A stretch of DNA of 64,000 nt, taken from NCBI GenBank assembly GCA_905178155.1, contig CAJINV010000013.1, positions 3,250,823 to 3,314,822 on the forward strand, in the 5' to 3' direction. The position numbers were made by a program, and so were the translations under genes. This document shows, piece after piece, positions 15,705-60,602 of this stretch. The first letter of the stretch is position 1. Each line of letters starts with the position of its first letter. The stretch is from Amoebophrya sp. A120. Lineage: Eukaryota > Protista > Dinoflagellata. The notes beneath the pieces were generated by a model. It did no database searches, was not told where the DNA came from, and was given only the letters and a program-made list of their open reading frames with translations.

Positions 15705-18700
15705 ATGAAGGCCATCGAGCCTGATCCACCCGGCAGCATGCAGCTAGCCACACTACAACCAGGCTCGCAGCCTGGTGTAGTCCAGGGTGTGGTGGCCAAG
15801 CCGAAAAAATCCAAGCTCGCGACTTTGCAGAGCGCCACGTCGATCAAAGAGATAACCGACCTGATTATGGTACCGGAATGCGGACCGCAAGAGATAGCGC
15901 TGCTGAAGGTGGTGTGCTTCGGGCTGATACTGTACCTCGCCTGTCTGATCCCGGTCATCATCATGTCCTGCGTGACCACGAAGACCTGCGACGTGGGGGA
16001 CGTGCTGGGCCCGACGGATTACTGCAAAGAGTATGGGCCGGGGGAGAACCCCATACTCACCGGCGGGGACATCTGCACCGTTGTTTGCGGTAAAATAAGT
16101 AGGAAACTTTGATGAAGATAGAGATACTGATAGGTTGAGCAGTGATCTACTTAAACTTCAATTTTGATTTTACATTGCAATATTATGCAGTCGATGTTTA
16201 TTGTTATTGAGACGTTCTGTTTTTTTTCACTCAGATAAAAAACGAAAACCCAACAAAAGAAATAGAATCTTGTAATTGTTCCAACGCACCATGACTACAG
16301 GCGGCAAGGAGGCAAATCGGCGGTACTACGAGCCGGTGCTCGAGTGCAGCGACGGCAACCTGGAGGACGCCGACACGGGCACGGCGGTGGCTTCCGTGTG
16401 TGCGATGCTGCCGCTTTCGCTGACGGAACTGTCGGAGGACGAGGCGATGGCAGCGTTTGCGGAGGCAAACAAGCCGGGGAACGTGCTTTTGACCGGGAAG
16501 TGCGTGGGCGCCACCGAACGGGAGATCCCCAACATTAACGCCGTATGGGATTCTCAAACGTTACATTCTCAACTGTTACATGATTTGTCATGCAAAACTA
16601 CCATCGTAATCCATTAACGCTGGACCGCACGGCCCAGAAATGATTTCAAAACAATTTCAAACTACTTTCAAACTGTGGGGCTTTTCAAAAATCAAAGCTC
16701 CAATGGCGCGGCCTGCGTGCTAGAAGGCGCTGCGGTTTGGTCTTGATGTTTCGGCGCATTTGCTTCTTTTTCGCCCAGTTCAGACCGCTGCGGGCTGAAT
16801 CCAGCGGAGGAGCTAGTGCGCCACTGTGTGCGTTGGGTCGCGCCGAAGTGCGTGGCAATATACTTGGGCCGAAATACGGCTCTCGTCGTTGGCCAACTCT
16901 ACATTGCCCGCGGGTCGTAACTCCGATCCGAACGGCCACAGGATAGACTCGCAGCGTCCATGTGACGCTGGGTTTCTCGGCTTCGTTAGGTGGGCGCCTG
17001 CGAGCACCGCAGTCTGTTGCATGGGTTCCTCCCCTGCCCCTTTTTTCGTCGCAAGGCAAGCCAAAAAGCGCCCTGCGACCGTCAGAAGCAGACGTTGCGC
17101 CCGGAGGGCAGCATCGCCGAGGGAAGCAAGCGCGGCGGGCTTCGGGATGGGCTCTGAAGAACCAGCGCGCGGGCGACTTGCCGGGGAAAATTCCTCGTCT
17201 TGGTGTTGCAGTGGTCCGCGCGCCTGCTCGTAGGTCGCGAGGCTACCTGAGACGGACGGGAAGAGGACGCAGACGGGGCCGCGGCGGGGATAGTCTCCCT
17301 CGCGGCTCTGCGCTACGTAGTCAACGTCGCGCCGTGAAGGCGAAGGGCCGCCTGGAGCATGCGGCATCCTTCCTGCAGCGCGTGGCCGCTCTTCGGAGCA
17401 AATTTGCGACGCCCGACAGGACAAGGAGGAAAGCCGGAGGGGGTGGGCCCCTGGTTCAGTAAACTCCATCGGGCGGCGACACCCGCTGGGCAAAGAAAGA
17501 AAAATAGGGCTTGGGCACATTCCAAATAATATCATCAAGGCATTTCAAAACGCCATCAGAATTCTGTCAGAATTCCGTTCCCCGATGGGTAGCTTGGTTC
17601 TGACGGAATTCTGACGGAATCTGACGGAATTCTGACGGCATTTTGAATATCGTCTTGATGACGTTTTGAAATTGGCCAAAATGCTTGATGACGTTTTGAA
17701 ATTGCGCAGGAGGCTTGATGGGATTTTGAAAGCGAGCGAGATGGCCGATGGCGTTTTGAAATCAGCGAAGGGCATTGATGGGCTTCGGAATTTCCGAAGG
17801 GCAGCCGTCGGCAATTCGGTGGGGCCTCGCGTACCGGTGTGCGAAGCGGTCCATCGGGCAGGGGCGTGCAGCTCTTCGCCCGTGTCGATGCCGATTGCCG
17901 CGAAGCCCCGCAGCCCACTGATTGCCAACGAGCCGCGCCGCCGGGCCCTTGGCGCAGGCACTACCTGCCGGCGCCGGTATTCTTGGGAGAGGTGCCGCGC
18001 CTGCCCGATTCGTATCGCCCGTGCCGATCGGGGGTGGGCGTGGGCGCCCCGTGTCTTGCTGCCCATGGCGCAGTGTCTATGCCTGTATGGGGTTGCCAAA
18101 CCGGGGCGGCAGCCAGGCGCCCGGCGCCCATTATTTGATTGTGGCGCCCCTGCGTGCGGCAGGTTTGCTCCGCCAGTGTAAATCGCTCGGGCCCATCGCG
18201 TACTGTCACATGTTGCAAAGGCCGGCGCCGCTCCGGGTGTGGGGCTCCGTGTGGAAAGGCCACACCAGACGCGCGGGCCCCGACATTCATGGCCGCGGGC
18301 GGCCCGTCGTTAGGCCCGCCAGCTCTTTGGCGGGCTTTTGGCATTCCCGTTGCAGTCAAGTTTGTGGGGCTGTATGCAATGAAAAATCGCACACCGCGGA
18401 GGCCCGCGGGGTTGCCACAGCATGAAAATGCTGGAATTTTGAAATTGCTTTGAAATTGGTTTGAATTAGAATTACAGCCCGCGCAGTCTAGAGTTAAAAT
18501 CCACAAGATCAAGCTGCTTCGCATGACAAATTTGCGAAGGGCTAAAGAGCACCTAAATCTGCGCGGGATTTGTAATGCAATTTCTGCAATTTTCCCCCTT
18601 TCACTGTTGCGGTTCTTGCATTACAAATTCATGTAACAATTGAGAATGTAACGTTTGAGAACGCCATACGCCGCCCAACCGTGTTTGGAGGGCAAGTTCA

Positions 18701-21700
18701 TTTCCCCAGTATCAAATGTAAAAATGTCTGGGTCTGGAAGAATGCGAGATTTATCATGCACGTTTTGCATGAGCCATGATGTCTGTGATGCATACCCTAG
18801 CAATACAGATTTTTTGCAGGCTTCTTGATGCCTATTCCGCATGACAAATGCCTTCTCAGCGTAGGAATGCAAAAATGTCTAGGTCTGGAAAGTTGTGATG
18901 CTGGGTGGCGTATCACGAAGAGGCCACAGGTGCTGGCTCAGCATGACAATTTTCTGAGCTTCTAGGTGTTGCCTATTCTGCATGACAAACTGCGTTTCTG
19001 CATCGCGCTGTGTTCAGATTAGCTTTTAGCTTGCTGCTTTAGATCACCTTCCGTTTTCTCTTTTTTCATCGACACAGATGCAGGTTGAAGATCGATTTGT
19101 ATGACGGCAGGAGCTTCAAGTAGAAGATCACTAGGGTTTACTCATCGGGGAGATAACCTCGTACAAAATCGGCACCCTTTTTTTTACTTTCTTTTACCAC
19201 TTTCCTAGCGCTATAAGCTCCTGCCGGGGTCTGGTCGAGAAGGCAGACCGAGATCAGCGGATCCGTTTCTTTTTGTTCCTCCAGTGTGGAGCGGCAGCAC
19301 CATCGTGGTGCTTTTTTTCCCCGCGACGCGATCGCTGGATCCTAGTAGCGCTAGACCCCTTTTCGCAGGCGCTCCTAAAGTGAGCCTTTTGCCGGTGCTG
19401 GCGCACTAAAAAAGAACCTCGAGACGGGGAAAAGCAGAAGCACGAAAGAGAAGACGGAGGCGGGGCACAGAAGAAAAGGGGAGTGGGGCATTAGGGAAAA
19501 AGAAGAGAAAAAAAGACGAGCGGGGGGGAAGGACTAAAGAACAAAAAAAAGAGCTGCAACTGTCTGGGAGTTTGCATGTCGAAGTCGTTCGGACTAGGTT
19601 TATTACCAAAGTGGCGCCAGGGATGCTAATTTAAAGACTGCGCTAAGGCAGCGCCCCCCTTCCCCAAGGGGTCCCCCCGGGGCGGGCGCGGTGGCGGCTC
19701 TGCAAGCGCGGAGCTCCGCGGGCCGATTCTCTGAAAACGCATACAAAAGGGTGCGGGAAGCAGATCGGTAAGAAGTGTTTGAAAGGGGCACGCCGTTGGG
19801 TCGTCCGCCATCGTGATAGGATCGCCGTGTCTGATCATTGGACCCCCTGTATATTTTTTAGCGCGCAACCGGTCACAGAAGTAAGTCTTTGAGCAAGTTT
19901 GTAAGACTAACCCATCAAGGCAATACTGGAGCTCCACCTTGCTCGCGGGCTTGGATGGTAAGGCAGGTCAGCCACACATAGCGCCCACTGGTTGTAGCCA
20001 TGCGTAAGCAATCGATAGCGGTTTTGCAGGTGCAGCCGGGTGGTAGTTAGGAAGTGGGCCGCGTCTCCACCTAGGGGTATCGGCAGAGGCTAAATCTGTT
20101 CTAACGCCCAGGTATTGGCAGAGGCTAAATCTGTTCCAACGCCCACCCGCCAGGAGTTAAATGGTACTACTACTACTACTACCAGCGTAGCAAAAATTGC
20201 ATTCCCTACTTTGGTACTCATGCAATACAGATTTTTTTGGAATCCAAATGCAGCATCACAAGTTCCATTCTTCCAGACCCAGACATTTTTACATTTGATA
20301 CCCGGGGAAAAAGTGCAACGTGAACTGCAAGTCGGGGTACTTTCCCACCGTGGAATCGCAGGAGTGCCGCCGCCCGGAAATGCTGCTACAGCCGGTGCAC
20401 ACCACCATCCAGTGCCTCGTCCAGTCGGAGCTCAACGCCTGGCGCGCGGAGATGCGCGCCCGCCCCTGCTTCCGCGACCAGCACTGCAACGGGAAGGGCG
20501 TGGCCATCCGGAACCAGGTGACTCTGGAGTGCAACTGCGCCTGCGAGCCGCCCTTCGTGGGGCTGACCTGCGAACACGAGGTGCGGGAGTGCCTGCTGCC
20601 CGAGATCGAGAACGCGGGCAAGCCGCCCTGCCAGGAGGGCTGGACCACCTACGTCCGCGGGCCCACCTGCACCGTCGTGTGCGCGCAGGACTACTTTCCC
20701 GCCATCCCGGTGCTGCGGTGCACGGGGTCCAACCTGGTCCCGGCCACCGGCGAGTGCCGCGGGGGCCCCATGCCCCCGACGGTCTGCGTCGTGGCCACCT
20801 TGTCGCTCTCCGGCCTGTACGTGTTCTTCGTCGTGGTCGTGTACGGCCTGTACTTTTGGCGCAACTGGCGCGTGAAGCGGGACCTGACCAAGATTTACGC
20901 CGGCGACCCGAAGTGCACCATGGTCGCGGAGGAAAACCACTTTTCCGGGGGGCAGACCAACGTGCTGAAGCCGTCGCAGACCGCGAAGCAGTACCAAAAG
21001 TCGAAGCGGGAACGGATGCCCATCCACCGGACCAACGAGTTTGGGGAAGTGGAGGTGGGCGGCGCGGAGAAGCTGGACTACGGCTCCAAGTCGGAGGAGC
21101 AGACGCGGCGGGAACTGCACAAGTTGTCCGAGTTGGCGGACTTGTCCCGGCAGAACGCGCTGCAGAAGGACATTCCGTTGGTGGAATCCGCCTACATGTC
21201 GGCGTACGAGGGCTTTCTGGTGGAGGAGAACTACGAATCCGCAAGTAAGCTGGTGCGGGAGGGGTACCTTTTAGAAGCTATACATTGCAAAAATGTCCGT
21301 GTCTGGAAGGTTGCTCCTGAGGTTTGTGATGCTGTGTCTGCTTGACACGGAAGGTGTGCCATGCAAGGCCTAGCATCACAGGTTTTGAGACGGTTTCCCA
21401 ATGCTAAATCCGCATGACAAAAACCTTCGTTCGGCGACAGGAAAAGGAGCGCCTTTTGCTGTCTAAGCATGACAGATTTTTGTGTGATCCAAGTATGCAG
21501 CACAAGTTCGCATCCTTCCAGACCCAGACATTTTTGCATTTGATAGAAGCAGAGTTAGACCAACTGGAAGAGGAGCGTCTCGTGGACGACGTCTTGCGGG
21601 AGAAAGAAAAACAAGCAGCGTTGGAGTTTGACGCGAGGAATCCGGTGTTCCAGGTGGAAGACCACGAAGACCCCGACACGCTGCTCCTCATGGCACCGAC

Positions 21701-23672
21701 GGACCAAAGGTAAGCACGACTTTAAAACAAAGTCGCACTTCGTTCATCGACGTGTCGCGGGCTAGGAGTTGGTTAGACGTGAAAATGGCATGGCTGAATG
21801 AAAAAGCATTGCGTCGTGATAAGTAGATTGCCAACCAGCATTCCTAAACAGTGAACACCATTCGCAAGTTTTCGCGAAAATAAAAAGGTGCAAAAATCAG
21901 CATACGCTGAATAAGGTAAGGACGAAAAAAAAAAAACTGGCTGCTAAAATAATTTCAGGTACGCCGTCGACCATTCCGGGCTCCCGATTCGCGACCCACT
22001 GACTGGTGGCACCGATCTCCGATACCAGGCGCCGCTCGTGGAGAACGCCGAGGTCCCGTCGCTCGCGGAGCAGGCGGACTGGGTAAACGAGTTCAACAAG
22101 TGCGACAACGAGACGAAATCCACAAAGCTGCAGAAGGAGGCCGTGCTAGAAATATTAGAGCGCTACGAGAACGGGAAGTGCGACTTTCTATCGATCCCGC
22201 AATTGGAGGCCGCGAAGGACGTGTTGGAGCGGGCGAAAGCGATCGCCGACGCGGTGGACTGCTGGCCGCTGAACAAACGATGCCGAGGGATGATGAAACG
22301 CGTCGCGGAGCTGAAACAAGTGCAGCAGGAGCAGCTAGACGAGAAGGTCGACCTGTTGATGCGCTCCGTCGCGTCAAAGAACCCGGAACAAATCGAAGCA
22401 GCCATCGAGGAAACTATGTTTCTGAAGGAGCAGTACCCAGTATCCGGGGTGAATTCTTGTTGCGAAGCCGAACTGGTCAAGTTGCCAAACTTGTCGCGCG
22501 GATGAGATTATAAATGCATCTGTTCCATGAAAACATTTTTCTCATTGACAAGCACAATGAGAATGACCACAAGTTTGCAAGCTGCGCCGAGGCGGCCGGC
22601 ACAAGTTTTCATTGCATATCCTGCGCTAATTGGACGATGGCACATGGTCGCGCAAGAAGTGGTTACCGACGTGATAAGGGTACTGCAGTAGCTGTTTTCA
22701 TATATGATTTCTGAGAAAATAAAGCACCCGTGATGCCATGCTAATGCATGGCGCAAAAATCGATATCGCTCATGATCGATCAGGTGAGTAGACGTAGAGA
22801 CTACGTACTTCGACGTCCAAGGAAGCGGTAGTACCGTTGTACTAGAAGTTCCACAAAAATTCCACATGTCTTAAAACAACTTACTTCTGCAGAAAGCGGC
22901 AAAGAAGAAGTCCCAGGAAGAGAAAGAGGTGAAGAAGATGATGGGGCTCATTGCGGATTACGACATTGGTCCGAAGGAGATCGTCCAGGCCGTCAAAGAG
23001 AAAGACGTTCCCAAGCTTCGCGCCGGTTTGAACGTTATGCATATGGAAGAGTCTGTCACTTGTACTTATTGCCTCTTGAACTTTGACAACAAAGAAGTCA
23101 AGTGAGGATCCGCGCACCACAAGTTGAAAATATAATGTCACCTACTTCATTTTTCACCATATTAGAATTTGCATTTTTATTCGTCTTCTTGTTCTTCATC
23201 TTCTTCTTCCACGCAAGAGGTACATACTAGTAGCAGACTTTTGCACATTTTCATACTGGCCTTCGTCTCGCCAAACACGCGGGATCCGGACACGGGGATG
23301 ACATTGCTCCACCTAGCTGCGATTAACTTCGATCAGCAGGTTTTTCTCCTCTTAATCAAGAAGAAGGCGGACGTGAACCTGTTGACGTCCCCGGACTGCC
23401 ACGACGTGTGGGACCTGGCCAGCAGCTACGTGCGCGGGTTCATGAAGCACAAACTGAAGCTGAAGGTGCCCACCGACCGGGTTTTCCTAGAGGACGACGA
23501 GGCCACGGTGAACTCCATGCTGATGTCTGCGGGGAGAAGTAGTGGCGGAGCAGCCGAGAGCAGCAGCAAGTCGCCGAGAAGGGGCGGTGGAGCATCCTCT
23601 TCATCTGCAGCAAAGTCTACCTCATCCCCCACAAACGCAGGAGCCGGAAACAAGGGCAGCGCGGCAAAGTAG
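15705..23672 (+). CDS. Receptor-like membrane protein: TM, Cys-rich/EGF-like ectodomain, TM, helical region, ankyrin repeats (~943 aa)
   Basis: Exons 15705-16089, 16301-16542, 18673-18708, 20305-21277, 21550-21709, 21959-22439, 22893-23034, 23260-23672 total 2832 nt in one frame. TM1 VVCFGLILYLACLIPVIIM; EGF-like CFRDQHCNGKG...CNCACEPPFVGLTCE; TM2 LSLSGLYVFFVVVVYGLYFW; ankyrin DTGMTLLHLAA...LLIKKKADVN. Start uncertain. Confidence 0.75.
16618..18493. mobile_element. Non-autonomous piggyBac-like element (TTAA target duplication) nested in an introner
   Basis: TTAA at 16614-16617 and 18494-18497. Imperfect TIR CGCTGGACCGCACGGCCC vs CTCTAGACTGCGCGGGCT (12/18), then a shared subterminal ttcaaa(a/c)caatttcaaa. 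GC-rich body with no recognisable transposase. Confidence 0.75.
17530..17795. repeat. Internal repeat array of the piggyBac-like element
   Basis: ctgacggaat(t) x3-4 (~17599-17640), ~30-bp units gatg..gttttgaaa (~17640-17795), and an inverted copy of both motifs at ~17532-17580. Confidence 0.75.
18710..20300. mobile_element. IR introner (TATCAAATG...CATTTGATA), flanks CCCAG/CCCGG, carrying a nested insertion
   Basis: Perfect ~35-bp TIR tatcaaatgtaaaaatgtctgggtctggaagaatg. Removing element + 5 nt gives FISPGKKCNVNC. Host size without the insert is 265 bp versus 267 bp for the sibling at 21279. Confidence 0.92.
18865..20182 (+). mobile_element. Retroposon-like (non-LTR/SINE-like) insertion with (TAC)6 tail and 8-bp TSD CAGCGTAG
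   Basis: CAGCGTAG at 18857-18864 and 20183-20190; (TAC)6 at 20165-20182; 35-bp tandem duplication at 20076-20145; no long ORF; no TIR. Confidence 0.65.
21279..21545. mobile_element. IR introner, 267 bp, perfect 5-bp DR GAAGC
   Basis: TIR ...tgcaaaaatgtccgtgtctggaagg / ccttccagacccagacatttttgcatttgata. Removal gives YLLEAELDQLEEE. Same family as 18710-20300. Confidence 0.92.
23036..23255. mobile_element. Degenerate IR introner (TATG...CATA)
   Basis: Degenerate ~40-bp IR; DR decayed (AACGT/CTGGC). Removing element + 5 nt restores the ankyrin frame (AGLNAFVSPNTRD). Confidence 0.7.
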
Positions 23673-24738: not shown

Positions 24739-26308
24739 ATGCCGGGCCGCGCAGTATCCTCGACTCTGTTGCCGCCTCGGAAGCCGTTCCGCCTATGGAC
24801 GTCGACCGGGGTAGTTGCTTTTTACGCACTCCTGATCGCCAATAGTGCCGATGGTTTGAGCCGCTTACACCGGAGACCGAGCACTTCTAGTAAAAAAGAA
24901 CAAGGGGACGACGCAGATGAAGCGGCTGGCACAAGAACTTCAACTGCAGTCGCCGGCGTAGTTGAAGGTAGCTGCGAGCCAAACAGCGCTGGGGATGCTG
25001 CACCTTTATCTGCAGATGATGACACTGGAGGAGAGCGCCATCAGGTGAGGCCCGCTACTTGTGATGGAGAAGTAAGATCGAAATATCGGCAAGTGGAAAT
25101 TGGGCACCAACACCAGCAGTCAGATCAAGCAGGTGGTCCCAACCAACGTGAACGGGCGTTGCGACACTGCAAGAACCTCGGGTCAAACTTGGCGCAGATG
25201 CTTCAGAAGGAAATCAATCATCCGAGTTCTACTTGGCAGCAAGCGGCGCGAGGAAAGAGGAACAACGACGCGGTCACTGCTGCTGTATGGAACGGAAAAC
25301 TGCTAGTCTGTGCGAGCAGAGGAACAAATTGTAGACAGACAGGCACCACCGCTTGTCATGCATAAAGTATGCCGTGCCTCTAGTGCCTACGATTCATTAT
25401 AGATGGCCTTGCACAGGGACCAACAGCAACACCAAGCTGCTCCTCAAGATTGCATGACAGGAACAATGAAGATGAACGAGAGCGACGCACATAGATCTTC
25501 ATGATTTGTCCAACTAAAAAAAAAGCTACAACAACTCGCTCGCAGCACAGATACCATTATTTCCACTTGATACAATCTAGTCTCCGCCGCGCAGTCCTTC
25601 ATTCGAACTTGCGGACCAAACGCTGGCTCCACCATCTCGGTCGTAATCCGCGATGTTCCTGTTAAACAAATGCCAGACCCCCGACATCCCCACAAGTTTT
25701 CCACGAAGCACCTCTACTCCTTCACTTTCACCGTCCTCGGCTACGCGGTATACCGGGAAAGCCGAGCGGTGGTGAGCACGCTGCTGAGCGCGGCGGGGAA
25801 CTCCCGGCTGCCGATCGACCTGACGGGTGTGGTAGAAACACTTGACGTTCTTGATCGGAGCGCCACGGGGATTGGTGGCGGTGGAGATGATAACGATGGT
25901 CTATCATCTCCTGTGCCGTCGGCTTCCCCTACTTCCCTTCGAGGCAAAACGGTGGAAAGGATGAGGATTCGGAATTACTACGCACAGGTGGTGCTCTTCG
26001 TGTGGCACACGCTGCGGAAGGAAGTAAGCTACAAGACTGCGCCGGTTACACCTACATCTTCCCGTTTGGGTGGAAAAGTACAAGAGAATCGAATCAACTT
26101 CGTCCAGCAAGTGGTGTATTTCGATGTTCAGACCTACCACAATGGACGGTCCGTGCTTGTAAGCGGGACACAAGTCCACAAAGTCCCCCTTGACCTCCTG
26201 TATCAAAATCGTGGCGAGGACGAGGTGGCCGAGCCCTCAAGCAGAAAGACGAACACGATTGCCGGTCGTCGTGGTCCTGCTATAAGCGGGCGAGCGGCCG
26301 ACTTGTGA
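24739..26308 (+). CDS. Hypothetical protein with signal-peptide-like N-terminus (2 exons)
   Basis: ORF 24739 (GVVAFYALLIANSADG) joins ORF 25670 in frame through non-canonical intron ~25285-25576 (AVTAA|LVSAAQSF). Confidence 0.55.
25286..25572. mobile_element. Degenerate IR introner (TAT...ATA)
   Basis: Weak IR (tat...ggaaa...tctgtgc...gagc at both ends); removal of element + 5 nt is in frame. Confidence 0.55.
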
Positions 26309-27446: not shown

Positions 27447-30400
27447 ATGGCCATCTGTGATGGCAGCGAGATCGCCTTGTCGGCCAATGCCCTCAGCCCT
27501 GCCGGAACCCGGTGGCGTCGTTTTTTTTCCGCGCTGCGGTTGTGGGCGTGGTACCCTCGACACGGCGAGCTGGAGCTGCGTAGGGAAGATTTAGTGCAGC
27601 CAGCGCTGGAGCATGTGGAGCATGCGAGCTCCTTTTCCAGTGCAACAGCCGTTGTGGATCATAAAAGACCTGCGAGGAATTCTGCAGAAGCAGGAGAACC
27701 TGAACCGCCCAACACGACCTCCTGCCCTCTGGGAACCTTCGCGAGCCAGCTGTTTCTCGCTGCGGTCTCTAACGCGAACGATCCGAGTGTCACTGACTTT
27801 TTGACGGATCCAAACTCCTTCTTCCTGGCGTGGCAGGCAGTGGAAGCGCAGCAGCAGCATGGAGATCCGGGGCAGGCTACAAGTGCTGCACAAGTTCTTG
27901 TACTGGAAGGTGTCAAAGCTGCCGATAGCAGTAAGGAACGACCTGGGAGGCATGCTAAAAATGAAGGAGCTTCTACCACTTCAGAATCCCCACCTTCGTC
28001 CTCCTCCCCGTCATCTCTCGTCGACACCCTGCTGACCCGATTTCCGGAAGACAAAAGCCTTATCCCGTGGGCGCCACTCTTCCGAGCGTTGGCAGCGCCG
28101 ATAGTCGACATACTGGAGCTGCGCGATCATGACGCTGCTAGTAGTGCTCCTGATTCAGCATTTGATGAACAGCTACAGCAGACAACGCTCGCGACCGCGA
28201 TTTTCTCCGGGTACCTGTGCCCAGAGGTAGAATATATACCCAACGATATACCCAAACCTGCGTATTTAGATTTGGTCGGTTTATTGAAAATTCCTCGATA
28301 AGTATTGAATCGTCACTCTTATCTATCCCACGAAAAAAGTGTATACAGTTACACACTTGTAGTGAATTTAGCAATGCAAATTTCTCTGCACGAGAGAGAA
28401 AACCTGCAATGCAGAAATCCTACAGGAAAATACATACGAAATTAGGCTCCTATGTATATCCGGCATGACAGAGCTTGTCTGTCTTGCTTGGCCTGCAACG
28501 CAATGTGTAATTGTGCAACTTTTTTTGTGCGATATTATCCAACTCGTCGGCCCTGCTGGTAAAACGACTCAAAAACAGCAGAGCGGAGTGGTGGAATTTG
28601 CATGCTTCTTCGTCTTTGAAGGAGTTGATAAAGACGAAAGCTTCCGCATTGAAGCGTCCCGAGGTCGCGCGCGCCTTTTCAGCTAGACGGCAACGACGGA
28701 GAACATGATGAAAACGCCGTGGCTGTTCCGAACAGCCACAGGCTTTTCGTCGCGAATGTTGTCCGTTTCTGGCAACGGCCGAACCTCCTCGGCCGCTGCC
28801 AGAAACGTGAAAAAGCGCGCTGAGAAAATTAAATTTAGCAGGTTGGGTGTTTTGACCCAACCTGCACAAACCTGCGGCGCAGGTTGGGTCAAAACACCCA
28901 ACATCCTAAATTTAATTTTCTCGGCGCGCTTTTTCACAAAATAAAATTTTCGCAACATGTTGTCCCTCAGCTGAAAATCGCAAAAAAAATCAGAATGCCC
29001 CCAAAACAAATTAACCTCCGCGCCGCGGTTCCGCCTTCGGGCCCCGCTTCTTCTTGGCCCGGGTGCCTTAGGGGTAGGCCCCCCACGTCATATTCCGACT
29101 GCCCGCGCGCTATGGTGTGTGTGTGGAGGCTGCTTGGGTTTTTCTGTGTTGTTTCACCAGGCCAGAGATGGCTACTTGATTTCATTTTTGGAACCCTTCC
29201 GGTGTTGATTGTTTTCATTTTTCGGATTAGAAATTGTCTTCCGACTTTGATTGAGACACGCAGGGAACTGATAGCTCAGCGAATGGTTGTGCCCTGGCGG
29301 TCGTGTCAGCGATGCGAGAAACTTCGTTGGCACTGAGGTGGGGAGGGGATTTGGAGGGTGTGGCGTATGTTCATATAGGTGGCGTTTCATATCAATATCT
29401 ATTGAGGATTTTTCAATATTTCGAGCAAATGCAAATACGCATGTTTGGCGAATAGTGGATCCATAGCTCGCTTCCGCAATCTTCTCCGGGTACCTGTGTC
29501 CAGAGGTAGAACTGGCAGCTCTAGGTGGTGAAATAAGCCAGCAGGAACGAGCTGAATTACAGAATTCGCATCACCATCACGTGCCAGCAAATAGAAGATA
29601 CGGTGCCGGTGGCGCAGAGGAGTCGGAGTCCGTGACTGAACTCTTCGGGAACGCTGACTACGCGTCACGCGGAGCGAAATTGTGTGCGAGAGCAAAGGCA
29701 ATCGCAAATGATGTGCAGGACGATGAAATTGGTGACGTCGGCCGCTCCAACGTAGTACCGGAACAAAAGACAGCGACTGACGCGAAAACGCAGCCTGTAG
29801 CTTCCCCATCAGTTGCCGCCCCGTCGGCGCAAACGCTTCTGCTCGACTGGATGGAACAGATCGGGGATGTTAGGAATCTTGTCTCGCGCTCTGCAGCCTT
29901 TTCAACAGGGAATGAAAGAAATGATGCAGCGCACGAAGAACAAAGGCACAGAACTCGACCAACAGGTGCAGGTCAACCTGTGCTCCCAGCTGCAAGTAGC
30001 TTGCAAAATACGCCGTATTGCTACGCAGCGTCGGACTTTCTCGTCGATCACGAGAAGAAGTCATCTTTGTCCGGTTCTACACCAACTCGGGACCGGCACT
30101 CGGAAGCAGTAGAAGTTTCCGACAATGAATCACCTGACGAAGGCTCATTTGCGTTTGAATTTTCCGAGACAATGCGACAACGGTGGTCGGCAGGCGTGGC
30201 GACTCGACGAGAGGAACGGGACAAAGAAGCGGAAGGTGGTGGCAAAGCTACCACGACCCCGCTCATTCCGCAGGGCCCCGCGGTAGACAGCGGAGTGCTG
30301 CCCTGCGAGGCGCAATTTTTTCTGGAGAGTGTCCGGGACCAAAACTGCAACGTCATAGTCGAAACGGGCATTTTCCAGGGCAGCAGCACCGAGTACTGGT

Positions 30401-31062
30401 GTCAATATTTTGAAGGAGCAGGGGAAAATCCTCAACGTGGCCGTGTCTTCGCTATCGATCGGGCGTTGCCGGCAGGTCGGACACCCGACAGTTACTGCAC
30501 GAAAGTGGTGGAGGACGATGGAGCAAGAAGTGCATCAAGTAGAGAAACTACGCAAACTGCTCATATTCACCAAATCCAATCCCAGCCCAACTTGCTGCGG
30601 ATCTTTGAGGGTGACGCCTTCGATCTGGTTCCCATGCTGCTCGCGCAACTGCAGCAACAGAACCGACAAGTTTTTGGAATGGACGAGGAAGTTGGAGATC
30701 ATGGCGATCGACGTGAAAAATCTGTTCAAAATATACAAGAGCATCCACTGCAGAACCGCGTCTGTCTCTTTCTCGACGGGCCCAAGGGCGCGGTGGCGGT
30801 GCGGTGGGCCGAGGAACTGTTTGTCAGGTTTGCGAACCTGATAAAAATCATCGGCTTTCACGACATGCACGCCGAGGTGAAGACGGAGAACTACTTTGTG
30901 GAGGAAGCACGCATGAGAGAAATCCTGTCAGATGATTCTCCTCCGCCAGCGAGGACTGGAACGAAAGACATAACCACTTCGGAGTCACCTTCACCTACTT
31001 CCACTTCTGCATCATCTCCGCCACAGCCGCACAAGAACCTAGCACGTCTCCGATTGCTATGA
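27447..31062 (+). CDS. Protein with a C-terminal class I SAM-dependent methyltransferase-like domain
   Basis: ORFs 27447 and 29581 join in frame across the 28.2-29.5 kb intron. Motifs VIVETGIFQGSST, RVFAID, IFEGDA, CLFLDGPKG, IGFHD. Both ends uncertain; a last exon (~31397-31483, GPGNHVVGIMYPAEK*) is possible. Confidence 0.6.
28233..29465. mobile_element. 1,233-bp TAT...ATA element with ~75-bp imperfect TIR, flanked by a 46-bp direct repeat of exon sequence
   Basis: TIR core ccaaacctgcgtattt...tattgaaaattcctcgataagtattga matches the reverse complement of ~29392-29465. Direct repeats at 28187-28232 and 29466-29511 (41/46 identical). Confidence 0.85.
28807..28937. repeat. Long palindrome, 59-bp arms (3 mismatches), 13-nt loop
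   Basis: 28807-28865 is the reverse complement of 28879-28937; the left arm contains a sub-hairpin gcaggttgggt-gttttg-acccaacctgc. Confidence 0.92.
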
Positions 31063-32606
31063 GGCAGAGAGCAACTCTTCTGAGGTACGTAGGTTTTTTT
31101 TTTCGGTTGATGCCATGCCTCGATTGGGAGCTGCTAGTATGTCAATGTCAATCCCCTGGGAAAAATCCTTCATGGCGTCGGCGGCACATGAAGAGTGTGT
31201 GATGGGTCGACCTCGACTTTTATTGCATGAGCAGAAAAAACAGCTCTTTCTTGTATACCGAGGGATCTTCGCGGAGCAGCTTCTTCCAAGTCAATATATT
31301 CTCAACGGTCGTGTACAACTAGGAATTCTAGTGCAAGAAAGTCAGTCACATTCTCACGTGTCACAAGAAAGGGTGTCTCTGCGTCTACTTCCATAGTCCG
31401 AGAAGAGTCGACATCCGACGAGATTTACAGAAGACGGTCCTGGCAACCACGTTGTGGGTATTATGTACCCAGCGGAGAAGTAGTCGGATGAGCATGAAGC
31501 TGCAAGAACTACAAGACGAGAAGTTTTTTTATCAGCAGGAGATCACGACGTAGTGTATTTTAATATAGGTTCCTGTCATAGATTTCGCACAATTTCAACT
31601 TGTTGTACGAATCGCGGGATCTTTCTACGTTCGCACGATGAACAAACATCAGAAACGCATAAACTGTTAGTTCTTGTTATCCAGCCGTCAAGAAGTATGC
31701 ACTTCTCGCAGGTCTTGTTGTGATTCTTGACATGATGATGACAAGATGAACTGGTGCTAGATCATCCGAAAACACACGAGTATGTTCTTTCGCGCGATAC
31801 GAAACATCAAAGAGAAAGACTAACACACGGAAAACGAAAAACGACACGAAACTATAACAGAGAGCAACAGGAGCCGCATTGCATTGACGTGCGTTTTTTT
31901 TTCCTTCATCTCAACAGCGACCTGAGGAGAGGAAAGAGAACAAGAGCAAGAGAGTAAGTAGACATAGTTTCAGTAGAATCGCCATTACATGAAAAGTGCT
32001 ACTGTGCAGGGAGTTGCACAACGATAGCTGCCCGACAGAGGGCATGACTGTCAGAGACCTTTAGGTGCTAGTGTGATCACATGTGATTGAAGTTTTGTTT
32101 TTCTGGTCCTGCCAAATAATTGGACGAGGCAGGGACGGCGATATCGACGTGATTTAGCTTGACTTTATACAGTGCCACACACTGCATTCCTTTGAATGCT
32201 TTTATTCCAGATCCCTCAGAAAAATTTGCTTAAGCGCACCTATTGCGTCCGTTTATCAATTCAATTACTTACTCCCGCTATTTTTATTGTCGAAAAGGAC
32301 AGCGAGTACTTCTTGCTATTTGTATTTGATGCAGCAGCCACTTTTATTTCAGTGTATGATATTAAAAAAGTTGAAAAGAAGTGAACACCGAGACGGCAAT
32401 AAAGCTGAAAAGCGATCTTTACGGTGCCTTTTCCTACGGGATGCACTAGTAGACCGTGCATCATCAGAGAAGCACGGGAAAGAAATTTCACTTTGATGTA
32501 GTTCCAATTTGTGTAGTTTGTTGCTTGAGGTAGTTGAGCTTGAAGCTTGTATCGGGGCTGCTTCAACATCTCCTTGTGAAGTTTAGTGCAGGACAAGGCT
32601 GCAAAA

Positions 32607-45289: not shown

Positions 45290-45342
45290 ATGACCAGATG
45301 GATCTAGTAGCGGTCAGACCGCTACTAGATCCATCTGGTCAT
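45290..45342. repeat. Perfect palindrome, 26-bp arms, 1-nt spacer
   Basis: ATGACCAGATGGATCTAGTAGCGGTC-A-GACCGCTACTAGATCCATCTGGTCAT. Confidence 0.95.
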
Positions 45343-52200: not shown

Positions 52201-52853
52201 AAGGGGTTCTCGACCAAATCGCAGGAGATCTAGCCGGATACCACGAGCACATAGTTGGCAGCCCAACGAGCAGCGAAGATGTCGAAACTGAGAGTAATCA
52301 CCATGACGACAACTACAGTCACGGCTCCGCCTCCTCCAAGAAACGGAGCAACATTGTTTTTGCGGCCCAGATGGGCTTCAATCCGGGCGGGTTGAGCAGC
52401 TACGCGACGGGACACGTCACCCCGGGAGAGAGCACAAGGAGAATGGAACTGTTTGGGTACGATGAAGATCATGAAGAATCGAACAAGGCGGGTCGTGTAA
52501 ACAGCGATAATTCACCGCTCCAATTTTTTGAAGATGCCGCGGCAGAAGAAGGAGAAGAAGATATGGGCAAGCCGCACCCGCCATTGGTTGAAAGTCGCGC
52601 GGGAAGTGTTGACCAGGAGCCGATGCGTCAGCAGAAGGAGCAAGTTCTTGAAGAAGACATCAAAACAAAAACTCGCCGGCAAGGTAGTAAATTTTTTTTG
52701 AGCCAGAAAAATCACGACGACCCCTCGGAGTTTCAAGACCTTTTCTTTCTTTCCCTGCGGCGGCATTTCCGGTTTGTGCACGTGTGGCAGGACAATTTCC
52801 GCGAATTTTACGTCATCGCAACCAACATGGAAGGGTTCCAATTGGCGGTATGA
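46236..52853 (+). CDS. Multi-domain AdoMet decarboxylase-like / spermidine synthase (aminopropyltransferase) fusion, tandemly duplicated module (~2,080 aa if one gene)
   Basis: Three same-frame ORFs. HQFSPFGVS...IAVHSWPE (SpeD-like); HRSEFQEIRIVE, LYLDRFLQSS, YHEALVQPAM, VLIYGGGEGATLREVLK, VVMIDLD (SpeE); ILSESHLTLH (SpeD pyruvoyl motif); IVILGGGLG...ITIVD (degenerate SpeE). Proposed introns 47667-47822 (GT-AG) and 49022-49237 (non-canonical). Confidence 0.75.
49022..49234. mobile_element. Degenerate IR intron element (TATG...CATA); frame restored by element + 3 nt
   Basis: IR tatgg...cgggaagaaagctcgtcttca vs tatgcgacggaaagagaagctacgtcctca; removal gives LYQAPTRAMQWLL. Confidence 0.65.
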
Positions 52854-54315: not shown

Positions 54316-57300
54316 ATGTCGGCTGCAGGAGCCTCTACTGCAGCTGCACCCCCGCAGCATGCATACGCTTCCACCCTGACGCAACTGGGCGATCATCAGG
54401 AGAAGTGGTTTTTCTCCCTGAAAAAACTCCAGGACGAGCGCGTAGACACCCTTCCCTACTGCATCCGCATTCTGCTGGAGTCGGCGGTGCGCAACTGCGA
54501 CGGGTTCGAAGTGAAAAAGCAGGACGTGGAGAATATTTTAAACTGGCAGAAAAATGCGGGTCAGGTGGAAGTGCCCTTCAAGCCCGCGCGGGTGGTGCTG
54601 CAGGATTTCACCGGCGTGCCCGCGGTTGTGGACTTTGCAGCGATGCGGGACGCCATGGCACGGTTGGGCGGGGACCCGACGCTGATTAACCCCTTGTGCC
54701 CGGCAGATCTTGTGATCGATCACAGTGTGCAGGTACGATGAAGAAGACTTAGCGTTTTTTTCCAGGTTTGTTCGTTACGGTTTCGGTCGACGTACCCGTT
54801 CATGACAATCTCGTTGGACTACTTTTTCTGCAACACCAATTTAAGTTTTACTTCTTTGTTCCAGGTTGATTTCAGCCGGACCCCAGAAGCGCTGAAGAAA
54901 AACGAAGATTTGGAAATGGAAAGAAACAAAGAGCTATGATATTGATGCAAACTTTGCTGGGAAAGGGAATAAGCCAGCAAAGGCATGGGTTATGGGCAGA
55001 GATAAATGCAACTTGTATACGAGTCACTACTACTAGTAGGTACCAAAATTTTCTTGAACATGATCAAAACCTAAACCCCGATTCTGTATTCCCGCCTCCA
55101 GCCCCAGCAGAGTTTGGCCCTTGCATACCTTCGTTTCCAGTTTCTAAAATGGGGCGCCAAGGCCTTCGACAACATGACGATCGTGCCGCCAGGCAGCGGG
55201 ATTGTACATCAGGTCAACCTCGAATACCTCGCCCGAGTGGTTTTCAACACTGAGGATGAAAGTAAATCTGTGTCATCAACTACACCGGAAAAGAAAAGGC
55301 TGCTCTACCCGGACTCTTTGGTCGGCACGGATTCGCACACCACCATGATCGACGGCTTGGGAATCGCGGGGTGGGGGGTCGGCGGCATCGAGGCGGAGGC
55401 CGTGATGCTGGGGCAGGCGATATCCATGGTGTTACCCGAAGTGATCGGGTTCGAACTCACGAACAGCATGGACAAACTCTGCACAGCGACCGATCTGGTA
55501 CTAGTACTACTCTGAATAATTTTATCATTTTCTCGGCTATTTGTAATTGTAATTCTAATTGTATTTATTCGAGAACCGCGGGCAACATGTACATTCCGTT
55601 CACATGAGATGAAGATGATGAGGCATATTTTTCCATTCCCATTCACCCCGCATTTTTTCGAAAAAGGTTCTCACCTGCACGGCGATGTTGCGGAAGCGTG
55701 GCGTTGTCGGGAAGTTTGTCGAGTTTTTCGGCCCCGGTTGCGCCTCGTTGACCGTCGCGGACCGTGCGACCATCGCGAACATGAGTCCGGAGTACGGGGC
55801 GACGATGGGTTTTTTTCCGACGGACGCGAAGTCCATGGAGTACCTGGTCCAAACCGGGCGGAGCAAGGTATGGCGTTCTCAAGTGTAGTTACATTCTCAA
55901 CTGTTACATGAATTTGTAATGCGAGAACAATAACAGTGAGAGTGGCAATATTGCAGCTTTCGCATCACAGATTTGCCACAGATTATCATGCTGCTTAGCC
56001 GTTCGAAAATTTGTCATGCTAAGCACCTCGATCAAGTGGAACTGGAAACTGATGGCAATTTTGCATGACAAATCCGTGTAACAGTTGAGCACGTAACAGT
56101 TGAGAATGCCATACAATGCGCAGGTCGCGCGGATCGAGAACTACCTTCGGGAAAACGGGTATGGGAGTGTCAGGATTGAAATCGTCAAAGTTGACAGAGT
56201 TTGTGACGCATAAAATGCTAGACGCAAAGGGCCTGTCTTGCAGAGCAGGCAACTGAGGCCGATTATAAGCCTGCTCCGGGTGTGAGATAGACCTGCTAAA
56301 ATAGCATGACAAAAGCAGTCTTCTCTGCTCAAACAGCATGACAAATTGGATTTCCATGCTCCCAAAATTTGTCATGCGCCACTTGCAAACTGGGCTCCAG
56401 CTTGTATCGCTTTTCTGCATTACAGATTGATTATCTCAACTTTGACGATTTCGATCCTGACGCTTCCATAACGGGCTGTTCCGGCTGTACGACAAGGAAT
56501 CAGAGCAGTTGAACGCGAAAATCAAGTACACGGACGTGCTGCACCTGGACCTCTCCACGGTTGTGCCCTGCGTGTCCGGGCCGAAGCGGCCCCACGACTA
56601 CGTGTCTGTAAAAGACATGCCTCGGGACTTCACGAGCTGTCTGACCAACAAGATCGGCTTCAAGGGGTTCGGGTTACCGAAGGAGAAATTGGCGGACACG
56701 GTCAAGTTTACGTACAAAAACCAGGAATTCGAACTGAAACACGGGTCCTGCGTCCTCGCAGCCATCACCTCCTGCACCAACACGAGCAACCCGGGCGTGA
56801 TGCTGGGCGCGGCGCTGCTCGCGCGGAACGCGCTGCGGAAGAACCTCTCCGTGTTGCCGTACATCAAAACCAGTTTGAGTCCGGGCTCTGGGGTGGTGGC
56901 CAGCTACCTGGAGGAATCGGGACTGATCAAAGATTTGGAGAAGCTCGGGTTCTACAAGACCGGGTTCGGGTATGGATGTGTCAGAGTTGAAATCGACAAA
57001 GTTGAAATGATTTGTCATGCATAAAATGCGACACATTGCTGAAGGCGCAAGGGAGGGGGCAGATTCTAGTGCTGAGAAGGGTCAAGAATTGGGCTGCTGA
57101 GTAGCATGACAGGGCGCAGCCATCTTGCCCTAAACAGCATGACAGACTTGCTTCGAGGCCAGGAAAATTTGTCATGCGCCGATTGGAAACTGTGGGTCCA
57201 ACTGGTATAGATTTTATGCATCACAAATTATTTTTTCAACTTTGTTAATTTCAATCCTGACAGTTCCATATCGGGTGCCAGACCTGCATCGGGAACTCGG

Positions 57301-60300
57301 GCGAGTTGGACGACGAAGTGTCCAAAGCGATCACGGAAAAGGACCTGGTGGTCGGTGCGGTTTTGTCCGGCAACAGGAATTTCGAGGGCCGGGTGCACCC
57401 CCTGACGCGGGCGAACTACCTGGCCAGTCCGCCGTTGGTCGTGGCCTACGCACTCGCAGGGAGGATGGACATTGACTTCGAAAAGGAACCGATCAGCGGA
57501 AACGTGTTTCTGAAAGACTTGTGGCCAAATCCGGAGGAGATTCGTAATACTTACAACTTGGTTTTGATTTGATTTGGATTTCATTTTCATTGTCAACAGA
57601 AAACAGTAGAGTGCTGCTTTTAATAGTGCTGGTGTTGTAAAAGAAACAAAGAAGCAAGGCGGAAAACGAAAAATATTACGTTGGGGGGCAGCGGAAGCGG
57701 ATGATGTCATGCAACTTCTACTGAAAGAGAAATAAAGTGTCATCGTGACCGCTGCAAAAGATGAACTTCGGTCTGTGGCATCGTCACGCGAGATCACCTG
57801 ATCACGAATCGTTTGTACTTAAGTGTAACCACGGAAAAAGGAAATTGAAAAACAGTCTTGCAAGATGAACAGATGCTACATCATCCCTTTGAAGGAGGAA
57901 AAGGATCTACGCATCCGTGATATTGGGGGTAGAGCGCGAGGAAGCGTCATGAACGCGACCCGCTTGTTGATGATCGAGCGAAGTAGTTCAAACAATTGAC
58001 AACAGAAGCGACAATGAAAACCAAAATCCATCTTCAGGTGCCTTGGAGCAAGAGTTCGTAACGGCAGAAAAGTTCCTGGATGCCTACTCGCGGGTGACAA
58101 ACGGCTCCGATGGGTATCCAAGCGAAAGTCTGAGGATGTTTCAGCAAGGAGCAAGAAGGTTTTAACTTTTGCATTCGAGACATCGAGGAACGGCATTTAA
58201 ATACGCAAAAGTATTTTAGCTGTGGTGCACTGGTTTTTGTTTTCAACTTCAACTTCTAGAAGGCGGTCACGCACGTCATGAAACCGATGATGACGCAACA
58301 CCGTCGTGAATAACGTCATTACGGATGGGGTTGCAAGTCAATTATCTTTCTTCATTGTTCTGCATGAAGAAGATGTGAAGACATGGTACTGCAGTTACTC
58401 TTAGAATTAGATTCACCATCAATCTTTCGCCCCCATACCGCATGGCAGAAACTGGTTGTGGAGGAAGGCAAGCAATATAACTGGAATGACAAGTCGACCT
58501 ACATCCACAATCCACCGTTCTTCCAGGGCGTCGCACGGGAACCCACGGCCTTGAAAAACGTATTTGCTGACTTGCAAAAATAAATGCTGCGAAGCGCGTT
58601 CCATCGCGTTTCAAGTGCAATAGTATCAGTTTCGCATTTGCACAAGCTACACGCAAAACTGAAGCATTTTGAAATTTATTTTCGTTTGAGCCGACAGCAC
58701 GCGAATCCGCTTTGCCTTTGTTTTTCACGGCATGCGGCTGCGAGATCTTTATCATTGTGGACGGATCTATCTTGAGCTACTACTATACATATTTATGAGT
58801 GTGTGCAAACGAAAACGAAATCACCATCAGGTCAACAACGCCTACTGCCTGTTGAATTGCGGAGACAGTATCACGACAGACCACATTTCACCAGCGGGAA
58901 AAATCGCCAAGAACTCACCGGCGGGAAGATATCTGTATCCGAGCGAAATTTTTACAGCGCCTGCGCCACGAAAGCCCTGGTAATATTTCCGCTCCTGTTC
59001 AAATGTACCGAAAGGAAAGCAGGGCGGGGAACAAGCATAAGCTACTTGTTTTGATGTCACGCACAGTTTTCGGTGGTGCGTAGCAATACTCACGATGGTG
59101 TGATGTGCTTCAGAAGTACGTATGAAACGTTGCGTGAGTAAGGGCGTTATCTATGCCACACAGCAGCACGACGTGAAAGCGCGTCTATTCGAGTGCGCGA
59201 TATTTCGTGTGCGTGACAGCTACAGAATAAATGACGCAGCCCCCCCTTCAAGTAGAGAAATTCCTTTCCAAGGAAGCCTAGAGCGCTCATCATTATTTCG
59301 CGTGCATAATTCGATGCAGCGTAGCATTAAGCCGGAGGACTTTAACTCGTATGGTTCGCGACGAGGGAACGACGAGATTATGGCCCGCGGGACTTTTGCG
59401 AACATCCGCATGATCAACAAGCTGATGAACGGAAAACTGGGTCCGCAGACCGTCCACCACCCGACCAGCAACTATGACCTGCTCAAACGTTACAATCTCA
59501 AACGTTACAGTAGAATCTGGGACTTGTCTTGCATGATGAGCATGACAGACTCGCAGAGCGTTCCACTTTCTGCAATACAAATTTCGCCGGATTATAGTGC
59601 GGTTTGGAGCTCCGAAACCTGTCACGCGCAAGCCTGTGGGAAGAGGCTAGATCATGCGCTCTTGCATCACAGATTTCGATTTCCATATTCTACTGTAACG
59701 TTTGAGATTGTAATACCTGAGCGGGCTATAGCAAAGTGATGGACATTTTCGATTGCGCGATGCTATACAAGCAGGAGAACGACGAGTGCTGCATCCTCGC
59801 CGGGAAGGAGTACGGCTCCGGGTCGAGTCGGGACTGGGCGGCGAAGGGACCGTTTCTGCAGAATGTGCGATTTGTGATCGCCGAGTCCTTCGAGCGCATC
59901 CATAGGTCGAACCTGGTGGGCATGGGCATCCTGCCCCTCCAGTTTATGGAAAACGAGAACGCCGACAAGCTGCAGCTGACCGGCAAGGAACGCTTACGCA
60001 TCGCAAAAGTAGCGCACTAGTACAATGAAAGGCAACAATGCAATTATGCTTCATCTACTGCTCACGAACAAAAATGCAATGTCTCATGCTACAACTAGAT
60101 CACGATCAGTTGGCAAGATAGGTCTGTTGTGCATGTCTCGTCTGACGAGTACAAGTGCGGTACTTTTGCACAGGACAACGGTTTTCCATCGACAACCTGA
60201 AGCAGCAGTGCATCGACGGCGGGGTCAAGGCGAAGGTCGTGGTCAAAGTGAATGACGGCAGAACGTTATCCAAGAAAAAAACGTTGTTAGTGTAAATTTG

Positions 60301-60602
60301 TGATGCGCAAGATGCAACGTGATTGCGTCTGTCATGCTTGGCATGCATCGTAGGGTCCATTAAAGGGCGTTTTCACGTACTATCCGCGCATGACAGGTTT
60401 TTGCTGTCATGCCAGACAAATTTGTAATGCGGTTCCTCCAAGAAAGTTGCACCGACAATGCTTTTTTCTTGGATAAACATTCCACGTGATGGCGAGGCTG
60501 GACACGGAACCGGAACTGGAATACTTCCAACACGGCGGGATTTTGAACTACGTACTGCGGAAACTGGCGAAAAACGCAAACGTGGGGATCAGCAGGATTT
60601 GA
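54316..60602 (+). CDS. acnA: Aconitate hydratase, AcnA/IRP1 type (926 aa, 14 exons)
   Basis: Exons 54316-54732, 54865-54933, 55132-55497, 55667-55867, 56118-56158, 56475-56969, 57275-57543, 58038-58113, 58442-58559, 58831-58934, 59313-59471, 59735-59992, 60181-60265, 60480-60602 total 2781 nt. Motifs [63 protein letters not shown]. 4 GT-AG and 9 non-canonical introns (non-canonical junctions can slide by a few nt). Confidence 0.97.
54935..55127. mobile_element. Degenerate IR introner (aconitase intron 2)
   Basis: TATG...caaactttgctgg vs ccagcagagtttg...CATA; removing element + 5 nt gives conserved [13 protein letters not shown]; no usable GT-AG. Confidence 0.8.
55869..56113. mobile_element. 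IR introner, 245 bp, flanks CAAGG/CAATG (intron 4)
   Basis: TIR tatggcgttctcaa/ttgagaatgccata; aligns along its length to the reverse complement of the 16544-18668 host. Confidence 0.92.
56160..56470. mobile_element. IR introner, 311 bp, perfect DR ACGGG (intron 5)
   Basis: 35-bp TIR with 3 mismatches; removal gives YLRENGLFRLY. Confidence 0.95.
56971..57270. mobile_element. IR introner, 300 bp, perfect DR TCGGG (intron 6); same family and orientation as 56160-56470
   Basis: Splits the Fe-S ligand motif; removal gives [12 protein letters not shown]. Confidence 0.95.
58115..58437. mobile_element. Degenerate IR introner (intron 8)
   Basis: tatccaagcgaaag vs ctttcgcccccata; removing element + 5 nt gives NGSD(G/A)WQKL in the aconitase register. 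Confidence 0.75.
58936..59308. mobile_element. Degenerate IR introner, flanks ATCTG/ATTCG (intron 10)
   Basis: tatccgagcgaaat vs atttcgcgtgcata (11/14); removal gives [22 protein letters not shown]. Confidence 0.8.
59473..59730. mobile_element. IR introner, 258 bp, flanks GCAAC/GCAAA (intron 11)
   Basis: ~44-bp TIR with core ttacaatctcaaacgttacagtagaat; removal gives [12 protein letters not shown]. Confidence 0.92.
59993..60180 (+). other. Non-canonical intron 12 of aconitase (4-bp DR AACG, subterminal 21-bp IR, no TAT...ATA ends)
   Basis: gcaaaagtagcgcactagtac vs gtacaagtgcggtacttttgc; removal gives LTGKERFSID. Confidence 0.8.
60267..60475. mobile_element. IR introner, 209 bp, flanks AACGT/AACAT (intron 13)
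   Basis: ~32-bp TIR beginning tatccaagaaaaaa; removal gives [13 protein letters not shown]. Confidence 0.92.

Follow-up and report, generated by a model that had tools for sequence, protein, structure and literature searches.

Transposon-like non-canonical introns in a 64-kb window of Amoebophrya sp. A120 are removed in a single register

Non-canonical introns flanked by repeats are already known from the dinoflagellate Amoebophrya sp. A120. Farhat et al. (2021; PMC7789003) reported that the inverted repeats of these introns start with TAT, that their direct repeats measure 3 to 5 nt (5 bp in Fig. S19 of that paper), and that the inverted repeats lie 1 to 5 nt from mapped splice sites, the borders being called variable or unknown. 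Their Table S4 lists GT-AC, CT-AG, AT-AG, GT-CG, GT-AA, CT-AC, AT-AT, AT-AC, and TT-AG as the predominant A120 types; the predominant types of A25 are TT-NN, and the A25 inverted repeats start with TTA. A 2024 review still describes the intron boundaries as significantly variable. Here, we analyze 64,000 nt of A120 (contig CAJINV010000013.1, positions 3,250,823 to 3,314,822 of the forward strand; hereafter the window), which reaches the end of the contig and for which an original prediction, made from the letters alone, had listed 17 introns that each consist of an element running from TAT to ATA plus 5 nt. We confirm that introns of this kind are cut in a single register, 1 nt before TAT and 4 nt after ATA (-1/+4), and that the register persists after the direct repeats have decayed. 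Coordinates are window positions, all introns lie on the + strand, a slash marks a cut or a junction, and the element families A to D are defined below.

Transcript evidence was obtained for an aconitase gene (Pfam PF00330 and PF00694) by comparing positions 54750-60700 (5,951 letters) with four runs, X1, X3, X5, and X9. X3 and X5 each contain one contig that skips 12 intervals, nine of them non-canonical and three of them GT-AG introns of this gene, and both have zero depth in unique intron bins, which is the behavior of cDNA. The RNA label of these two runs is a guess, and the RNA evidence consists of assembled contigs from this one gene region. As predicted, the contigs skip all eight listed introns by exactly the element plus 5 nt. 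The joint of intron 58114..58441 (element 58115-58437, 323 nt) is 58113>58442, with an ambiguity of 0, and falls exactly at -1/+4 even though the repeat has decayed to ATGGG and CCGCA, a 1/5 match. An ambiguity of 1 remains for 54933>55132, found in both X3 and X5, at intron 54934..55131 (element 54935-55127, 193 nt, repeat decayed), for 55867>56118 at intron 55868..56117 (element 55869-56113, 245 nt, family A), and for 58934>59313 at intron 58935..59312 (element 58936-59308, 373 nt). It is 2 for 60265>60480 at intron 60266..60479 (element 60267-60475, 209 nt, repeat AACGT and AACAT) and for 59993>60182 at the ninth, unlisted intron, 59994..60181 (element 59995-60177, 183 nt), which has the same geometry with degenerate ends, T/TAC...ACA ACGG/. 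Intron 59472..59734 (element 59473-59730, 258 nt, family A, repeat GCAAC and GCAAA) has the joint 59466>59730 with an ambiguity of 5. Introns 56159..56474 (element 56160-56470, 311 nt) and 56970..57274 (element 56971-57270, 300 nt) both belong to family C and have perfect duplications, ACGGG and TCGGG; their joints skip 316 and 305 nt, each with an ambiguity of 6 and with -1/+4 inside the interval. One more canonical intron lies upstream in the aconitase region and was located from a loose contig end.

Removal is at the RNA level and not in DNA. The DNA run X1 has an even depth of ~43x in unique sequence, its contigs pass through the introns (e.g., 57243-59499), and none of the RNA joints was found in its contigs over the compared region, with the limit that contigs can miss rare forms. 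Thus, the elements, which lie within coding exons, are carried unexcised in the DNA and are removed in RNA. The raw RNA run X9 gave 0 reads matching 54750-60700, and it probably comes from another strain under the same species label.

Two annotated proteins provide seven further junctions. P0053 (962 aa) and P0067 (819 aa), both NCBI unnamed protein products of Amoebophrya sp. A120, map with 100% identity to 15705-23669 and 27447-31480, respectively; exons were searched one at a time, and the junctions were tested by translation against both proteins. In the P0053 gene, the four listed introns at 16544, 18710, 21279, and 23036 must be 2130, 1596, 272, and 225 nt long, which again is the element plus 5 nt. 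Intron 16543..18672 (element 16544-18668, 2125 nt, family A) has a large nested insert and a perfect duplication, CGCCG, and its feasible junctions include 16542/18673. Intron 18709..20304 (element 18710-20300, 1591 nt, family B) likewise has a nested insert, with the repeat CCCAG and CCCGG, terminal inverted repeats that match over 30/30 nt, and a feasible set that includes 18708/20305. Intron 21278..21549 (element 21279-21545, 267 nt, family B) has the perfect duplication GAAGC. At intron 23035..23259 (element 23036-23255, 220 nt), where the repeat has decayed to AACGT and CTGGC, P0053 allows only 23033/23259 or 23034/23260, that is, offset -2 or -1. Intron 22440..22622 (element 22441-22618, 178 nt; G/TAT...ATA TCCT/), which was not listed, has a mostly decayed inverted repeat; its junction in P0053, ..EQYP/ALIG.., fits -1/+4 and is weakly informative, with feasible offsets from -8 to 0. 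P0067 adds two more unlisted introns. For intron 31057..31399 (element 31058-31395; C/TAT...ATA GTCC/), whose direct repeat has decayed, there is one feasible junction, 31056/31400, exactly at -1/+4. Intron 28236..29469 is a 1234-nt composite (element 28237-29465; A/TAC...ATA GCTC/ under the rule), for which P0067 allows 28234/29469 or 28235/29470. Nested within this composite, at 28324-28534, is a family-type element whose TTATC duplication is perfect, and on either side of the composite lies one copy of a duplicated exon segment of ~46 bp (28187-29513); P0067 keeps both copies, with AIFSGYLCPEVE occurring twice.

Nine RNA joints and seven protein junctions thus back 16 non-canonical introns, and all 16 are compatible with the -1/+4 register. 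The three supported genes, in which seven or eight introns are GT-AG, showed no further kind of non-canonical intron. The two unique junctions, 58113>58442 from RNA and 31056/31400 from P0067, are both at -1/+4 with decayed repeats, as the predicted ruler requires, and element 31058-31395 had been absent from the original selection. Elements 55869, 58936, and 54935 allow offsets of -1 or 0 and exclude -2 and lower, 60267 and 59995 allow -1 to +1, and 59473 allows -6 to -1, with 0 and beyond excluded because the retained base is that of the downstream repeat copy. The -1/+4 register is the only offset compatible with all intervals, and it is contained in all ten informative ones, an agreement with a chance of ~1e-5 under uniform offsets from -5 to 0 by our own rough calculation from the intervals. 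The cut is shown to be independent of AG and of repeat homology. What is excised is always the complete element with five flanking bases, namely the final base of the duplication copy on its upstream side and the first four of the copy downstream, and the sequence that preceded insertion is thereby restored exactly.

Orientation and internal content do not alter the register. The ends of element 16544-18668 are homologous to those of 55869 in inverse orientation, and 37443 and 39467 (69% identity) form a second opposite pair; both pairs obey the same offsets relative to the transcript, and thus the asymmetry of 1 versus 4 nt is imposed by the machinery and does not come from the sequence inside the element. 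Moreover, the 2125-nt and 1591-nt elements of the P0053 gene are small members of their families that nested inserts have enlarged, yet each is removed precisely as the element plus 5 nt, and internal content is therefore irrelevant to removal. A Pfam search of the open reading frames in these inserts (16614-18497 and 18857-20190; up to 254 aa) gave no match even at E<=1, and a piggyBac-like or retroposon label for the inserts is unsupported, as no transposase was found in that search.

The elements themselves are the published introner elements of A120, short non-autonomous DNA transposons with terminal inverted repeats and a 5-bp target duplication. A check of the sequence upheld the 17 listed elements: the start is TAT in all except 38307 (TAA), and a partner ATA end was located for each through inverted-repeat complementarity. 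Four introns of the same kind (elements 22441-22618, 31058-31395, and 59995-60177, the last with TAC...ACA, and the composite 28237-29465) bring the set to 21, in which the 5' triplet is TAT in 18, TAC in two, and TAA in one, in agreement with the published A120 introners, whose terminal inverted repeats of 8 to 20 nt start with TAT. By blastn the 21 elements fall into four multicopy families (A, 16544/55869/59473; B, 18710/21279; C, 56160/56971; D, 37443/39467) and 12 singletons, in keeping with the claim of several unrelated families. Perfect 5-bp direct repeats flank five copies exactly as had been listed (CGCCG at 16544, GAAGC at 21279, CGAAG at 39467, ACGGG at 56160, and TCGGG at 56971), and the repeats of old copies have decayed. 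With terminal inverted repeats, a duplication of fixed length, no coding capacity, and sizes of 180-370 nt, the elements have the features of miniature inverted-repeat transposable elements. One listed detail failed: the 3' end is AG in two of the 21 introns (21279 and 38307) and not in a single one. We also note a sub-terminal motif, TTTGTCATGC / GCATGACAAA, which together with its reverse complement lies ~41-45 nt from each end and is common to young copies of unrelated families. As a required branch site the motif is ruled out, as it is missing from eight old introns, six of which are spliced according to RNA or protein.

Copies elsewhere in the genome have the same ends. A first look with five query families gave 1154 to 2486 candidate copies each, with >2200 for family B (21279), >2400 for family D (39467), and >1100 for the 60267 family. 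With three families as queries, the whole assembly was searched, and 87 copies outside the window were examined. Of these, 83 start with TAT and 82 end with ATA, homology stops exactly at TAT and ATA, and the duplication is 5 bp (64 perfect and 19 with 4/5 matches), never requiring to be read as 6. The coding strand of the 87 copies, taken from spanning open reading frames, was too noisy to use; a strand-free test for a G as first intron base ("G5 or C1") gave 34/64 against ~45% expected, which is not significant. Among the 64 perfect copies, the duplication has G at position 4 in 33/64 and C at position 2 in 24/64, which suggests a weakly palindromic, NCSGN-like target site.

The listed introns beyond the supported genes follow the same pattern. 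Support within the 17 divides into RNA for eight, annotated protein for four, conserved spacing for three, and frame continuity alone for two, so that the predicted restoration of the frame is borne out by spacing at 32939, 38307, and 39467 and by continuity of the frame only at 25286 and 37443. Intron 32938..33163 (element 32939-33159, 221 nt) lies in a nicotinamidase (isochorismatase-family) gene; the rule joins ..VDFQHDFM to EGGNLAV.., and a downstream exon matches PF00857. The resulting spacing is presumably that of PncA-type enzymes. The short nicotinamidase exons had no significant match among PDB sequences. In a gene with internal repeats of YGSIRKGWNEALDP, the repeat spacing is preserved across intron 38306..38525 (element 38307-38521, 215 nt, TAA...ATA) by the junction YGSIL/RAWNQFVDP, which also joins frames of 178 and 155 codons in phase, and the spacing of internal repeats is likewise preserved across intron 39466..39789 (element 39467-39785, 319 nt, family D, perfect duplication CGAAG) by ALDPK/GKNMLTFDEF. 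The putative intron 37442..37771 (element 37443-37767, 325 nt, family D) joins frames of 83 and 178 codons in phase. For the putative intron 25285..25576 (element 25286-25572, 287 nt, direct repeat decayed), the sole basis is the in-phase joining of open frames of 182 and 243 codons under the rule.

The positioning of the cuts may divide into what is read and what is measured. The original prediction had the splice sites placed by distance from the terminal stem; the fixed register, set neither by AG nor by repeat homology, held, and the choice of a stem over the terminal triplets is supported only in part, as +2 is always T and +3 always A and introns 22441 and 59995 keep register without predicted terminal pairing. 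A pure structural ruler would have the terminal stem alone set both cuts by distance (1 nt and 4 nt) from the end of the helix, with no base being read. In its favor, the minimum-energy helix of 16 of 19 introns is closed in register by TAT:ATA, with the stem at +2 to +4 and -7 to -5, nested elements of 1.6-2.1 kb show internal content to be irrelevant, both orientations work, and the last four intron bases (-4 to -1), at the 3' cut, are random-like over the 21 introns. Sequence constraint at the ends points the other way. All 21 introns, decayed elements included, have T at +2 and A at +3, in which they match the canonical introns of the same genes, which begin G/TA; A is likewise found in 21/21 at both -7 and -5, and this constancy at four positions is far beyond chance. 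T occurs at +4 in 18/21 and at -6 in 20/21. Moreover, 22441, 38307, and 59995 lack predicted TAT:ATA pairing, with stems that start at +5 to +10 (+10/-13 in 59995), and 22441, by protein, and 59995, by RNA, are still spliced in register, the in-register support for 38307 being internal-repeat spacing only. Finally, the A25 inverted repeats that start with TTA go together with predominant non-canonical types that begin TT (PMC7789003). We therefore regard a pure structural ruler as unlikely, and measurement from the helix, as opposed to the terminal triplets, is only partly supported. Covariation of the inverted repeats was set aside as a test of the stem, as an RNA stem and symmetric binding by a transposase would both produce it. 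It looks instead as though the 5' side is read as sequence (N/TA) and the 3' side is measured.

Who makes the cut is a related matter. A hairpin-recognizing endonuclease and a ligase could release the intron as a circle, as proposed for the nonconventional introns of euglenids, and this reading gains from the lack of AG and of any conserved 3' signal, from a fixed stem geometry that resembles the euglenid stem (+4 to +6 and -8 to -6) with duplication-like repeats, and from the report that U1 small nuclear RNA is undetected in A25 and A120. A near-complete spliceosome is nevertheless reported to be present, canonical 5' sites in these genes have the same bases at +2 and +3, the window shows an enrichment of G at +1 (11/21), and the flanks are direct and not inverted repeats, so that no exon-side helix of the bulge-helix-bulge kind can form; on these grounds we think a non-spliceosomal pathway rather improbable. 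It might also be that there is no common ruler, that cuts fall anywhere in the duplication with old introns keeping their own position under selection, and that the agreement at -1/+4 is a coincidence. Most junctions are indeed ambiguous intervals, and Farhat et al. place the inverted repeats at 1-5 nt from mapped splice sites (PMC7789003). Both unique junctions and ten of ten informative intervals say otherwise, however, and the published predominant A120 types are all NT at the 5' end, so that coincidence seems very improbable. Least credible of all is excision from DNA in the manner of ciliate internal eliminated sequences, with the spliced contigs derived from rearranged DNA. TA-bounded ends and precise removal do recall those sequences, and the RNA label of X3 and X5 is a guess, yet X1 has even depth, intron-spanning contigs, and none of the RNA joints, and in the X3 and X5 contigs GT-AG introns are skipped as well, with unique intron bins at zero depth.

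The account that we propose is that introners are removed in a fixed register with N/TA read at the 5' side and the 3' cut measured. A spliceosome, reportedly without U1, would read N/TA(T) as the 5' splice site, the terminal hairpin would place the 3' end beside it, and the 3' cut would be measured 4 nt past ATA and not read from sequence, since the last four bases are random and AG is absent. Every predominant A120 type in Table S4 (PMC7789003) has T at +2, as a cut at -1 predicts. Several points weigh against this account. The involvement of a spliceosome and a lariat is a proposal only, an inferred mechanism. The enrichment of G at +1 comes from a small sample and did not recur among young copies across the genome, which have G at position 5 of the duplication in 20/64. 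There are only two unique junctions, the others being intervals that contain -1/+4, and intron 28236..29469 fits only if its 5' triplet is TAC, the alternative being TAT...ATA plus 3 nt. Five of the 17 listed introns (25286, 32939, 37443, 38307, and 39467) are without RNA or annotated-protein support, and the RNA evidence comes from contigs and not from raw reads, so that minor junctions and levels of retention are beyond its reach. On balance, we hold the proposed account as a whole to be somewhat more probable than otherwise.

Its extension to the genome is more tentative, and we put it at a little under even. Tens of thousands of A120 introns may have a 3' site measured 4 nt from the end of the element or from the hairpin, the sequence at the cut carrying no information, and a 5' site that consists only of TA at +2 and +3, and the published variability of motifs may be no more than the random 5-bp duplication of the target as viewed through a single register, whether the cuts are made by a U1-less spliceosome or by a separate endonuclease-ligase pathway; insertions into coding sequence would be silent. 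If the register holds genome-wide, the chaotic splice dinucleotides would be explained as target-site sequence, gene prediction in A120 would gain a simple deterministic rule, and A25 may, by analogy, have a register of its own. The recognition question would also become testable, namely, whether the 3' cut tracks ATA or the stem. The costless invasion of coding exons by a DNA transposon would be explained as well, as the two offsets sum to the 5-bp duplication made by the transposase. If the ruler reading is true, splice-site selection would have a measuring mode, under which any coding insertion of these transposons is silent.

Other features of the window concern the genes around these introns. 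A search of representative proteins with exon 20305-21276 returned mostly Sushi-domain proteins of other dinoflagellates and linked the P0053 gene to P0002 (EukProt, 995 aa, ~70% identical), in which the C-terminal half of the P0053 gene is joined to a P0067-like C-terminal domain. P0002 probably comes from a third Amoebophrya strain. The A120 annotation has the P0053 and P0067 regions (15705-31480) as two genes, with a further gene region in between. Exon 25577-26305 had no protein match in the database, and 23.7-27.4 kb and 31.5-46 kb had no match among the retrieved proteins. Farther along, 46116-52850 contains three long open frames (555, 445, and 1243 codons) that share one reading frame and are separated by single in-frame stops at 47781-47783 and 49119-49121.

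How this locus compares with known systems can be stated most directly for the A120 introners of Farhat et al. The genome, the TAT inverted repeats, the direct repeats, the hairpin ends, the thousands of copies in many families, and the RNA-seq-backed non-GT-AG borders are the same, and the statement that such a class was already known in Amoebophrya is correct (PMC7789003). The differences are that here all testable junctions fit one register, which persists after decay of the repeat, and that the register covers composites of 1.2-2.1 kb, above the 1000-bp limit of the published analysis. A statement of a single register was not found in the searchable literature. Thus, the class is known, and the single -1/+4 register appears to be an unpublished refinement.

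The closest mechanistic counterpart is the nonconventional intron of euglenids (Milanowski, Guminska et al.; PMC11282704), which shares non-canonical borders, a terminal stem at fixed positions, and duplication-like repeats at the junctions, and for which an origin from miniature inverted-repeat transposons is likewise suspected. The euglenid stem, however, lies at +4 to +6 and -8 to -6, whereas that of A120 lies at +2 to +4 and -7 to -5, and euglenid introns leave as circles after the conventional introns, whereas A120 introns are known from their junctions alone. The introners of Micromonas and Aureococcus (Huff et al. 2016) and of Polarella and Symbiodinium (Roy et al. 2023) are, like those of A120, transposons removed together with one copy of the duplication, so as to be silent in coding sequence; losing the element along with one such copy is the general introner principle. 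Those canonical introners supply or create GT and AG sites, whereas the A120 introns have a 3' end without AG and take their first base from the duplication; element and duplication together do not make a GT-AG pair here, with AG ends in 2/21 and G as the first base in 11/21. Finally, Fritillaria borealis (Henriet et al. 2019) also has non-canonical introns with inverted repeats and target duplications, and there an adapted major spliceosome removes them. Its preferred borders are AG-AC and AG-AT, with an exonic TAC that forms the 3' site, whereas the A120 introns are constrained only at +2 to +4 and -7 to -5.

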